Source: Octopus bimaculoides
Lineage: Eukaryota
Length of the DNA stretch: 42,238 bases
Reading direction: 5' to 3'
Assembly (NCBI RefSeq): GCF_001194135.2
Contig: NC_068994.1
Coordinates: 5,301,757-5,343,994 of the forward strand
Positions 217-3,900 of the stretch are shown here, in pieces (within the stretch, counting starts at the first letter, position 1; each line of letters starts with the position of its first letter). The notes below the pieces were generated by a model that saw only the letters and a program-made list of their open reading frames with translations, did not search any database and was not told where the DNA came from. A program made the position numbers and the translations under genes.

Positions 217-921
217 CCCAGAGAGCTGATATTAAAGACTGGCCTGAAAAAGAACGAATACCTGAAAGCAAAGCGAGACCTTTCAGTAAAGAGATACGTG
301 ACATAGCTGAGATAAAAGAAAAAGCTGCGAAAATACATATTCCTGAAAAAACACCAAAAATTAGTGGAATAGAGACACTTGAAAGCAAAAGGATATCTGA
401 GCGTTTCCAGGTACCTGGGAAAACACAAAAGACTGATAGAACGCCGATATCTGAAAGAATACAGATTTCTGAAGATAAACAGATACCTGATTATTATCAG
501 ATTCCTGGAAAAACAAAGGAAGCCAGAAAAATACAGTTTCTTGAAGATAAACAGGTATCTGATAAAATACAAATTCATGCAAAAACACCAAGAACTGGTA
601 AAATACACAGTGATTATTTTCAAGTACCTGAGAGATCGCAGAAATCAATGACAATCCAGATTCCGGAAGATAAACAGATATTTGAGAGAATACGAACTCC
701 TGAAAAACAACCGAAAACTTGGAAAACAAAGCTACCTGGGTTTAAAAGGATATCTAAGTTTTTCCAGAAACGTCGGGAAGTACAGATTTCAGAAGATAAA
801 GAGATATCTGAAGAAATGTCCGAGGAGGCACCGAAAGCGGAGGCTAAGCAGGCAGCTGAGGATTTATCTAAATATTTTCATCTATCTGAGTATGGACTGA
901 TACCTAAGACAAGAATAACTG
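1..921 (+). CDS. PTP-like gene: large charged, repeat-rich exon (5' end outside the window)
   Basis: The frame is open from nt 3 ([14 protein letters not shown]...) to ...[12 protein letters not shown], followed by a strong donor G|gtaaga at 921/922 (phase 1). Linkage to the PTP exons is inferred from phase compatibility. Confidence 0.72.
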
Positions 922-3900
922 GTAAGATTACCTATCTATCTATCTATCTATCTATCTATCTATCTATCTATCTATCTACCAACGTCCATCATTCTTGTCT
1001 CTCCCCCCCTCTCTCTCTCTCTCTCTCTCTCTCTATATATATATATATATATATAGGGAGAGAGAGACAAGAATGAGACAAGAAATTTAGCTAGGTGTAA
1101 AATTCACCTAAGGGATATTAAATATCCGAAAACTTTACTGGTTTATATTATATCAATAACAATGTTATTCCAATAGGTAAATAAAAAACAAACATAAGAT
1201 TATTAATATATAGATATAAATAATAAATTGAATAACTATAAATTCAATTCAATTTAAATATTTTATACAAACAAATGACATATCTCATAAATTACAGGTG
1301 CTTCCACTTCATTAGTAAAACAAAGTTTTTTAAGAATAATCAAATCCGTTTAAATATCTAAAGATGCTTCATCAGAATTGAAAATATTTATAACTACTAA
1401 GGCTTTACGGAAACGCTTTATATANNNNNNNNNNNNNNNNNNNNNNNNNNNNNNNNNNNNNNNNNNNNNNNNNNNNNNNNNNNNNNNNNNNNNNNNNNNN
1501 NNNNNNNNNNNNNNNNNNNNNNNNNNNNNNNNNNNNNNNNNNNNNNNNNNNNNNNNNNNNNNNNNNNNNNNNNNNNNNNNNNNNNNNNNNNNNNNNNNNN
1601 NNNNNNNNNNNNNNNNNNNNNNNNNNNNNNNNNNNNNNNNNNNNNNNNNNNNNNNNNNNNNNNNNNNNNNNNNNNNNNNNNNNNNNNNNNNNNNNNNNNN
1701 NNNNNNNNNNNNNNNNNNNNNNNNNNNNNNNNNNNNNNNNNNNNNNNNNNNNNNNNNNNNNNNNNNNNNNNNNNNNNNNNNNNNNNNNNNNNNNNNNNNN
1801 NNNNNNNNNNNNNNNNNNNNNNNNNNNNNNNNNNNNNNNNNNNNNNNNNNNNNNNNNNNNNNNNNNNNNNNNNNNNNNNNNNNNNNNNNNNNNNNNNNNN
1901 NNNNNNNNNNNNNNNNNNNNNNNNNNNNNNNNNNNNNNNNNNNNNNNNNNNNNNNNNNNNNNNNNNNNNNNNNNNNNNNNNNNNNNNNNNNNNNNNNNNN
2001 NNNNNNNNNNNNNNNNNNNNNNNNNNNNNNNNNNNNNNNNNNNNNNNNNNNNNNNNNNNNNNNNNNNNNNNNNNNNNNNNNNNNNNNNNNNNNNNNNNNN
2101 NNNNNNNNNNNNNNNNNNNNNNNNNNNNNNNNNNNNNNNNNNNNNNNNNNNNNNNNNNNNNNNNNNNNNNNNNNNNNNNNNNNNNNNNNNNNAAATGTAA
2201 TTTGTTGTTGTCGGCACTCCGTCGCTTACGACGTCGAAGATTCCAGTTAATCCGATCAACGGAACAGCCTGCTCGTGAAATTAACGTGCAAGTGGCTGAG
2301 TACTCCACAGACACGTGTACCCTTAACGTAGTTCTTGGGGATATTCAGCGTGACACAGTGTGACAAGGCTGACCCTTTGAATTACAGGCACAACGGAAAC
2401 AGGAAGTAAGAGTGAGAGAAAGTTGTGGTGAATGAGTACAGCAGGGTTCACCACCATCCCCTGCCGGAGCCTCCTGCCAGTTCGTATTCCAGTCCATTCA
2501 TTCCTAGACTTCCATCCCTCTCTCCCTCCCTCCCTCCACTCATCCTTCCACTCATTCTGTATTACTGCTTTAATTAAACTCGCTACAGTTACCTTCCCAT
2601 AGAAAAAAGTAAAAAAAAAAAAAATATAGGAAAAATGAATGATATTAGATATTGGAACGATGAAAATTGTGAATAACATTAAATATAATACATTGTTGCT
2701 TGAGGGTAGTAAAAATATAGGTGTATTCAGGAATTCAAAACCGCATAAATTCTTAACCACCTTCTTTTGGTCTGTTGTTTTCTGAGGATTTCCTAAGGAT
2801 CGCGTGAGGTTTGAAGACGAACTCATTTCTATTTATCGGCCATTAAGTGATCCACCAATTATGAAATACATAAAACAACAATTGAAACTGCGTGAACCGT
2901 TTTTAGATGACTTTTTGGTAAGTGTTTTCTTTAAGTTGTTAATTTGAATACAATTATTTATAAATACATCTGGTAAATTGTGAAAAGAAAAAACACCTTC
3001 TGGCCCGTTGCATTTTTGACAGGGCGATAAAGAAGTGTCTAATTCAATGTCGAACAAATCACGCAAGAAACTTCGTTCAAAGAGAATCGATTTTTCTGTT
3101 TCTCATCGATGTTTCACCATTTAATGATATACATTGATGAATGCTACACACAAGCATACACACGCACACACGCACGCACACACACATGCGCACACACGCG
3201 CGCACTCACGCACACACTCATGCAAGCATCCATACATGCACATGTAACATGTACGACTGCAAAAGATTTCGTCTACCAAATTCCATTCATAACTTATTGG
3301 CCATTTATAGGCCATGACAAAAGTCACTTGTCCAAAGCGTCACGTCGTGGAAGAGAACGTGGATCCACGTGGCTGTTAAATGAACTTGTTTACTACACAA
3401 CAACATCTGCACTCATATAGGAGAGTATGGGAGACTTTACTGTAACGTCCTGAAAATGAGCAACGTTATTTTCAATGCTGGTGAGCAACAACTTTTAAAC
3501 TAGATTATAATTCTTATTTGTAATTTTCATTTATGTTGCTAATACACTTGAGAAAGGCATGAACATTACACCATTACATGTCGTCTGCTTTAAAATCAAG
3601 ATATTGATCCTATCTAGTGATTAAATGTTTCAGACAAGAAATATAGCATGTAGTTATCTCAAAATGAAGCAAGGTTTTAGTCAGTAGTACATTATTCGGA
3701 ATGCGTTTTCAACGTATTTTCCATCTTCATTGGTCTATAGCAGGTGAGTAGCTCAAAAGTTAAAAAGAACGAATATCTGTAACAGTGATCTAAAGTGTAC
3801 TAATAATGTTTGGCTTATAAAAAGGCAAGTAGGGATGATCTGTACATTAGTGCAATATTGTTGAAGCAGATCGTAATTTTCATTAGAACAAATACATTTT

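Follow-up and report, generated by a model that had tools for sequence, protein, structure and literature searches.

Gene structure at the locus

The region described here is a stretch of 42,238 nucleotides from the octopus Octopus bimaculoides (NC_068994.1, positions 5,301,757 to 5,343,994 of the forward strand), referred to below as the window. It carries a gene for a receptor-type protein tyrosine phosphatase (RPTP, with PTP for the phosphatase itself), and the segment of interest is the one encoded ahead of its first phosphatase domain, where several tyrosines resemble motifs of the immunoreceptor tyrosine-based inhibitory type (ITIMs). The window consists of AT-rich animal DNA interrupted by nine N gaps. 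A model of 17 exons on the forward strand, starting at the ATG at 177, avoids all nine gaps, and its translation is exactly the annotated protein of 821 amino acids (aa), here called P0086. Every intron is bounded by AG/GT, the phases are consistent, and neither a stop nor a frameshift interrupts the model. The protein is listed in the database as 'receptor-type tyrosine-protein phosphatase T [Octopus bimaculoides]', but this name, PTPRT, is an automatic one. The coordinates are collected in Table 1, in which L001 denotes the genomic locus of P0086 (GCA_001194135.2, CM046614.1); base 1 of the window corresponds to L001 9825.

Table 1. Coding, repeat and motif features of the octopus PTP gene (window coordinates, except where L001 is stated)
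Feature	Position	Strand	Remarks
Tandem repeat of 72 nt (24 aa), 3.0 copies, 96% matches	1..216	+	Tandem Repeats Finder; runs into assembly gap
Exon 1 (5'-truncated)	3..921	+	K/E/R/I/P-rich repeats before D1; annotated ATG 177-179; part of P0086
Degenerate hexads I-[S/P]-E-x-x-Q, 27 full	393..921	+	Column composition; contains all five exon-1 tyrosines
DYYQIP (Y106, Y107)	489..506	+	Hexad IPDYYQ; not an ITIM match, Pro at -2
SDYFQV (Y147)	609..626	+	ITIM-consensus match; copy of repeat unit ISERFQVPG (394-419)
SKYFHL (Y233)	867..884	+	ITIM-consensus match; repeat unit common to SDYFQV, ISKFFQ, ISERFQ
SEYGLI (Y239)	885..902	+	ITIM-consensus match; hexad LSEYGL then IPKTRI; opposite acidic-Y-x-N-[ILV] in alignment A2
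Intron 1	922..2786	+	Donor G|GTAAGA at 921/922, acceptor AG 2785-2786, phase 1; contains N gap 1425-2192
Exon 2	2787..2917	+	Holds SIYRPL (Y265) and MKYIKQ (Y276); homology to P0116 and PDB entries from residue 273
SIYRPL (Y265)	2828..2845	+	Exon 2, last disordered residues; ITIM-consensus match
MKYIKQ (Y276)	2861..2878	+	Exon 2, first confident D1 helix; absent from initial annotation
D1 (predicted pseudophosphatase), first four of 8 exons	4051-4138, 10135-10208, 11329-11353, 12579-12676	+	PF00102
D1 (predicted pseudophosphatase), last four of 8 exons	16147-16269, 18682-18839, 20499-20634, 22834-22983	+	PF00102
D2 and C-terminus, first four of 7 exons	24044-24113, 27546-27592, 28542-28667, 30195-30329	+	PF00102
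D2 and C-terminus, last three of 7 exons	30547-30698, 31151-31286, 32281-32352 (stop TGA, 32350-32352)	+	PF00102
Transmembrane exon	L001 4537-4616	+	Same strand as PTP gene, ~5 kb upstream of window

In exon 1, frame 3 is open over 306 codons and has no stop against about 21 expected from the composition (P about 5e-10); frames 1 and 2 hold 6 and 45 stops, respectively. P0086 reads ...KTRIT-G-FPKDRV..., which is a direct join of exon 1 to exon 2. As the N gap between the two exons lies inside intron 1, the reading frame is independent of it, and the P0086 annotation has no micro-exon within this gap, a point on which the DNA alone is not decisive. The motif region thus lies within the PTP coding sequence, as the initial annotation of this DNA had assumed, with exon 1 joined to the first phosphatase domain (D1).

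Some of the smaller exons were recognized only with the help of the annotated protein. The two small N-terminal exons of the second domain (D2) were not located by tblastn or by a home-made D2 hidden Markov model and were supplied by P0086. A weak KNR/INA-like similarity at 24.2-24.45 kb had been considered as a D2 exon and was dropped, the P0086 exons lying elsewhere. P0086 also confirmed a micro-exon of 25 nt in D1 (NRKYIITQ, third D1 exon in Table 1), which has a perfect polypyrimidine tract and a GTAAGT donor and codes the YIATQ motif of D1. P0086 itself was missed by both word-indexed protein searches (exons 1 and 2, no match; D1, best match of 34% identity) and was recovered only by a profile search, though the query was 100% identical to it over more than 240 aa. 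A word-indexed search without a hit is, therefore, unreliable for low-complexity queries or imperfect exon junctions, and these two negatives do not amount to absence. A literature search returned nothing on O. bimaculoides PTPs relevant to this gene.

Two phosphatase domains with lost catalytic residues

Both domains of P0086 are recognized by the Pfam model PF00102, D1 with E = 1.3e-60 and D2 with E = 1.2e-26. The solved structures that match P0086 do so from residue 273 onwards; the best of them, at E of about 1e-82 to 1e-79, include the PTPRS/LAR tandem, and PTPRA, PTPRE and CD45 are also among the best matches. In the AlphaFold2 (AF2) model, D1 and D2 both have a predicted local distance difference test (pLDDT) score above 90.

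The catalytic residues present a different picture. In D1, KNRY/F has become KNRD, WPDHG has become WPERG, the Cys of VHCSAGVGR(S/T)G is replaced by Ser and the Gln of the Q-loop by Glu. The Arg of the P-loop is retained, and IIENRSQ stands in place of VQTxxQ. On comparison with 45 relatives, the canonical residue is found in 44-45 of them at the columns of D449E, H479Q, C480S, A482N and Q524E, and in every one at D449E, H479Q, C480S and Q524E. Overall, of the 96 columns conserved to 85% or more, P0086 deviates at 34. In D2, the signature has Gly for Cys and Lys for Arg, and the N-terminal KNR/pTyr-loop region is missing, while WPD is retained (IWPDKS). Judged by these residues, D1 is catalytically dead, in agreement with the initial annotation, and so is D2, a point which that annotation lacked. 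With neither domain expected to be active, P0086 would be a double pseudophosphatase. It has the two PTP-fold domains of a tandem receptor-type PTP and lacks the catalytic D1 of such enzymes; the predicted retention of the PTP folds, together with the loss of catalytic residues in D1 and D2, places the gene in the known class of receptor pseudophosphatases.

The closest relative, P0116, shows 36% identity to P0086 over 555 aligned residues and has the D1 motifs WPDHG and VHCSAGVGRSG intact. The D2 counterpart in this protein, ILHCLYGINKKG, retains the Cys and has Lys for Arg. The C-terminal tail of P0086, encoded by the last exon, is rich in tyrosines, but the Y-x-N of the family is lost there, with K820 standing against Asn in 38 of 40 relatives.

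A gene so altered may also be one in decay or one that is wrongly modelled, that is, an RPTP duplicate drifting to a pseudogene, or a gene whose exon 1 lies outside the mature mRNA, so that its motifs would be functionless. The number of altered conserved columns and the loss of both catalytic sites agree with this, as does the fact that all differences between the 72-nt repeat copies of exon 1 are non-synonymous. No transcript with exactly P0086 was found, the genome being the sole record, and an assembly gap divides the annotation. However, decay is hard to reconcile with 17 exons of regular splice sites and consistent phase, with the confident prediction of both folds, and with an exon 1 that is open throughout and in which the repeat indels are all multiples of 3. 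Decay or mis-modelling is, therefore, considered unlikely.

Probable receptor context upstream of the window

Base 1 of the window directly follows an assembly gap of 2422 N (L001 7403-9824, about 5,299,335-5,301,756 of CM046614.1). Exon 1 thus lacks its 5' end, and the Met annotated at 177 is no more than the first ATG past the gap. The 72-nt tandem array at the gap edge may be the cause of the gap.

On the other side of the gap, and on the same strand, there is a separately annotated gene of 691 aa with F5/8 type C domains, which ends at L001 5165. Its last exons code two EGF-like modules and a transmembrane helix, THIIEIIIAIGILVSLVLIAVCICCW, followed by a GTAAGT donor; the very last exon of the model looks unconvincing. 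The EGF-like exons match the ectodomains of the molluscan RPTP relatives (E = 1e-6 to 1e-4). The transcript of P0116, taken from a Logan contig, combines on a single molecule an EGF-like end, a transmembrane helix, KRSKKKKK, a linker of roughly 85 aa and the two domains D1 and D2. In this contig (L002 1-260, SRR29271478), a frameshift in an A-run, AAAAAAGAAAAAAAAAGG, just past the transmembrane helix splits the EGF-transmembrane part from a PTP open reading frame (ORF) of 606 aa, and is probably a homopolymer assembly error.

From the upstream transmembrane and EGF exons and the layout of P0116, it follows that a receptor is likely, in which the motifs would be cytoplasmic. The models of 691 aa and 821 aa are probably halves of one receptor gene split by the gap, P0086 being probably the cytoplasmic half of a discoidin/EGF receptor. 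The join of the transmembrane exon to exon 1 spans the 2422-N gap and hence unread sequence, with the two sides annotated as separate genes, so a single transcript is inferred here. The motif region itself immediately precedes D1 in the protein, and no hydrophobic segment separates the two; the region is therefore cytoplasmic if the protein is a receptor. The initial annotation had placed the transmembrane region outside the window, which agrees with the transmembrane exon found upstream, and had called for recovery of the upstream exons. The candidates found probably belong to the same receptor, though their junction with exon 1 would lie across the gap.

A linker built from repeats

The sequence before D1 is made of repeats at two scales, the 24-aa units at the 5' edge and the degenerate hexads that follow. 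Autocorrelation of I/L/V in exon 1 has peaks at 6, 12 and 18 residues. At the DNA level, the spacings between repeat copies (families D1-D7 of the repeat analysis) are all multiples of 3. The open frame and these spacings together indicate that exon 1 is coding and has evolved through in-frame duplication. In a blastn comparison, neither the 9.8 kb upstream nor the remainder of the window contained a further copy of exon 1, and thus exon 1 is not a dispersed repeat.

The hexads place the tyrosines in a fixed setting. Position 2 is Ser in 10 of the 27 hexads, and position 1 of the next hexad is I/V/L in 18 of them. Four of the five exon-1 tyrosines stand at hexad position 4 (IPDYYQ, (H)SDYFQ, LSKYFH and LSEYGL), and, because Ser occupies position 2 in the last three, these match the ITIM consensus. 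In addition, ISERFQVPG (394-419), HSDYFQVPE (609-632), ISKFFQKRR (from 751) and LSKYFHLSE (865-890) are DNA-level copies of one unit (repeat families D5 and D6). SDYFQV and SKYFHL are therefore not independent events, and in the other two copies of the unit, ISERFQ and ISKFFQ, the position of the tyrosine is taken by Arg or Phe.

The tyrosine motifs and their expected number

The initial annotation had described DYYQIP, SDYFQV, SKYFHL, SEYGLI and SIYRPL as tyrosine motifs, four of them as fitting the ITIM consensus, and all five were recovered in the open frame at the positions of Table 1. The four that fit [SIVL]xYxx[ILV] are indeed SDYFQV, SKYFHL, SEYGLI and SIYRPL. In exon 2, SIYRPL was correctly reported, but a second tyrosine, that of MKYIKQ, had been overlooked. 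All four ITIM-like motifs have Ser at -2, which is the weakest permitted class for SHP binding. Asn at +2 is found at none of the tyrosines before D1.

How surprising the count appears depends on the null model. With a plain shuffle of residues, the probability of at least three matches in exon 1 is 1.25e-4, and a calculation from the number of [SIVL]..x..[ILV] frames in exon 1 gives 2e-3. When residues are shuffled within the hexad columns, it rises to 0.047. The possibility that the motifs arose by chance, which the initial annotation had raised, is thus rejected under the plain shuffle, while the count exceeds chance only marginally once the hexads are kept. Repeat periodicity and duplication account for most of the motifs' significance. 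More generally, periodic repeats manufacture matches to short linear motifs, and a plain shuffle here makes them look over a hundredfold more significant than they are.

These results bear on the proposal that the motifs are true ITIMs. According to it, four phosphorylated motifs would recruit active SHP-2 or SHIP in trans, making an inhibitory receptor on a dead PTP. The premises of this idea are sound: four consensus matches exist, both D1 and D2 appear to be dead, and transmembrane and EGF exons lie upstream. The spacing of Y239 and Y265 would also suit a tandem-SH2 protein. The ITIM function itself is unsupported, as it draws solely on a permissive consensus. Most of the matches are accounted for by the hexad frame, Ser fills the -2 position throughout, and the paralogous repeat units have Arg or Phe where the tyrosine should be. 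The true-ITIM model is, therefore, improbable. Lower still is the likelihood of a cephalopod-specific version, in which the expanded repeat linker of a dead receptor would have become a multi-tyrosine array recruiting SHP-2/SHIP in trans. If true, the ITIM reading would amount to a new way of building an inhibitory receptor, with a pseudoenzyme outsourcing its catalysis.

Relatives and conservation

Conservation of the motifs, which the initial annotation had looked to as a check, was not found in the nearest relative, no orthologue being available. The alignment with P0116 begins at residue 273, and that protein has no counterpart of Y147, Y233, Y239 or Y265; the MKY of Y276 is LSY in P0116, inside the first D1 helix. 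When the exon-1 translation was scanned exhaustively with HMMER against 1.84e9 representatives, only P0086 itself was recovered, and Pfam gave no match to exon 1.

The juxtamembrane regions were compared across 84 relatives having at least 90 aa before D1. The ITIM consensus is common among them, occurring at 37 of 369 juxtamembrane tyrosines, with at least one match in 31 relatives, mostly with intact catalytic motifs. This again speaks against a special role of the consensus in a dead receptor. Another motif is also widespread: Y-x-N-[ILVMFT] is present within 130 aa before D1 in 39 of the 84. The family consensus has VYYN about 8 aa ahead of the D1 start, with variants such as VYGNV and VYKNL, and a C-terminal Y-x-N is also common.

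The family motif raises the possibility of generic phosphotyrosine docking. One or more linker tyrosines may be phosphorylated by Src-family kinases and bind SH2/PTB proteins, the dead receptor serving as an adaptor; the partners proposed are a Grb2-like adaptor, a Src-family kinase, SHP or SHIP, and the SKYFHL-SEYGLI region would be the most plausible site. Such a site would derive from the acidic-Y-x-N-[ILV] motif that molluscan and brachiopod RPTPs commonly carry in the juxtamembrane region. A precedent is PTPRA, whose pY789 (YANF) recruits Grb2, Src and BCAR3 (PMC7959691). The frequency of Y-x-N-[ILVMFT] and the position of VYYN in the family are in line with this proposal, as are the predicted disorder around the tyrosines and the larger alignment, A2, which sets the octopus segment at the position of the family motif. 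On the other hand, none of the octopus motifs has the Asn at +2, the C-terminal Y-x-N is lost too, and in the smaller alignment, A1, the family tyrosine is opposite a Phe, in octopus VRFEDEL. Because A1 and A2 disagree, the homology of the octopus tyrosine to the family tyrosine is ambiguous. Generic docking is regarded as a tentative alternative that deserves some weight, and SH2 binding at the linker tyrosines is possible.

A proposed disordered tether in a probable receptor pseudophosphatase

The reading preferred here, held at a probability of about 0.6, is that of a repeat-built tether, disordered and specific to the lineage, in a double pseudophosphatase of the receptor type, with ITIM-like matches that are incidental. 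The part of the protein encoded between 3 and 2917 would be the intracellular segment between the membrane and D1 of the receptor-type tandem PTP P0086. It was built by in-frame tandem duplication, of 24-aa units that are still 96% identical and then of hexads. The hexad frame I-[S/P]-E-x-x-Q sets Ser at -2 and Ile/Val/Leu at +3 of whatever fills position 4. With an aromatic residue, Tyr or Phe, at this position in a subset of hexads, the three exon-1 'ITIM' matches come with the repeat, and the fourth, SIYRPL, falls at the boundary of the folded D1. As a flexible charged tether, the segment may space a non-catalytic D1-D2 scaffold from the membrane, and P0086 would then work in the manner of PTPRU, through partner binding or competition with active paralogues. 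On this model, the linker tyrosines, being exposed, could undergo phosphorylation, although selection for an ITIM array is unlikely to have shaped them.

Several observations weigh against the reading of the motifs as incidental. Even with the hexads kept, three matches are on the high side (P about 0.05), and P0086 alone among the 84 relatives has at least three ITIM matches in the last 130 aa before D1. Y239 and Y265 are 26 residues apart, and a distance of about 26 residues is usual for tandem-SH2 engagement. All four motif tyrosines lie in sequence predicted to be disordered and accessible, the AF2 pLDDT being below 50 up to residue 268 and at least 88 from about residue 271, where the low values over residues 1-268 are due in part to the lack of aligned sequences there. 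In A2, the SKYFHL-SEYGLI region is opposite the family acidic-Y-x-N-[ILV], with the Tyr of SKYFHL as the match, and by this placement a real docking site may be the ancestor of at least one octopus tyrosine. In molluscs, too, ITIM signalling has been reported, the oyster CgNCAM1 interacting with SHIP2 (PMC11841013), which adds to the case for true ITIMs.

Comparison with known receptors

Among the known systems, PTPRU comes nearest to the preferred reading. This vertebrate receptor PTP of the R2B type has two pseudophosphatase domains, and a scaffold role in competition with active paralogues is proposed for it (10.1101/805119). Like P0086, it is a tandem receptor PTP with a non-catalytic D1 and D2 in which the fold is kept. 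PTPRU retains its catalytic Cys in an occluded form, whereas the octopus D1 has Cys to Ser, Asp to Glu and Gln to Glu changes. The ectodomain of PTPRU is MAM-Ig-FN3, and that of the octopus protein would be discoidin/EGF-like. The repeat-built linker of P0086 is absent from PTPRU. Thus, O. bimaculoides would have an intact receptor-type PTP, predicted to be well folded and to be dead in both domains, as an invertebrate counterpart of PTPRU. The transmembrane proteins PTPRN/IA-2 and PTPRN2, which have an inactive PTP domain, are also among the human pseudophosphatases (PMC7959691). Unlike P0086, they have one PTP domain with its Cys kept, are dense-core-vesicle proteins and have an unrelated luminal domain.

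Closer by descent are the molluscan RPTPs with the EGF-transmembrane-D1-D2 layout, namely the P0116 transcript, P0057, P0062 and P0024 of Mytilus, and P0123 of Crassostrea. With P0086 they share the D1 subgroup (LPKGL[IL]H, RSQLE[FY]IY), a degenerate D2 and EGF-like repeats adjoining the transmembrane helix. Their D1 keeps VHCSAGVGR(S/T)G and WPDHG, in contrast to the apparently dead D1 of the octopus. Their linkers are of about 85-150 aa and contain the acidic-Y-x-N-[ILV], whereas that of the octopus has at least 270 aa of repeat sequence without a homologue.

The ITIM receptors, namely vertebrate PECAM-1, SIRP-alpha and PD-1 and oyster CgNCAM1, are like P0086 in having [SIVL]xYxx[ILV] in a disordered cytoplasmic segment and, for P0086 probably, in being of type I. 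Their tail is short, while the cytoplasmic part of the octopus protein exceeds 800 aa, includes two PTP folds and has repeat-derived motifs that all have Ser at -2. PTPRA, with pTyr789 (YANF), is an RPTP bearing its own SH2-docking tyrosine, and in relatives of P0086 the motif Y-x-N-[ILVMFT] occurs ahead of D1 as well as C-terminally. P0086, unlike PTPRA, has lost the Asn at +2 at every candidate docking site.

Other elements in the window and locus

Repeated ORF fragments with the tail ...SKYKDLEIE...IP(L/V)IVGALG...QK..L.GTAHILRK.LS occur in the window at 4389-5481 and 21116-22368. Further fragments of the SKYKDLEIE type lie upstream, at L001 3468-4145, 5740-5973 and 6409-6606. A Pfam search with these fragments gave no credible match; presumably, they are the 3' end of a retroelement family scattered in introns. 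Another ORF fragment, at 32933-33271, resembles the C-terminus of a PIF1/Helitron-type helicase (...SQGQTL...FSHGQIYVACSRV...), its sole match being a weak, sub-threshold one to a Pfam helicase model (E = 1.3e-3). Downstream of the PTP gene, at 37065-37220, there is a fragment of the N-terminal helix-turn-helix of a mariner/Mos1-type transposase (PF17906, E = 3.9e-12).

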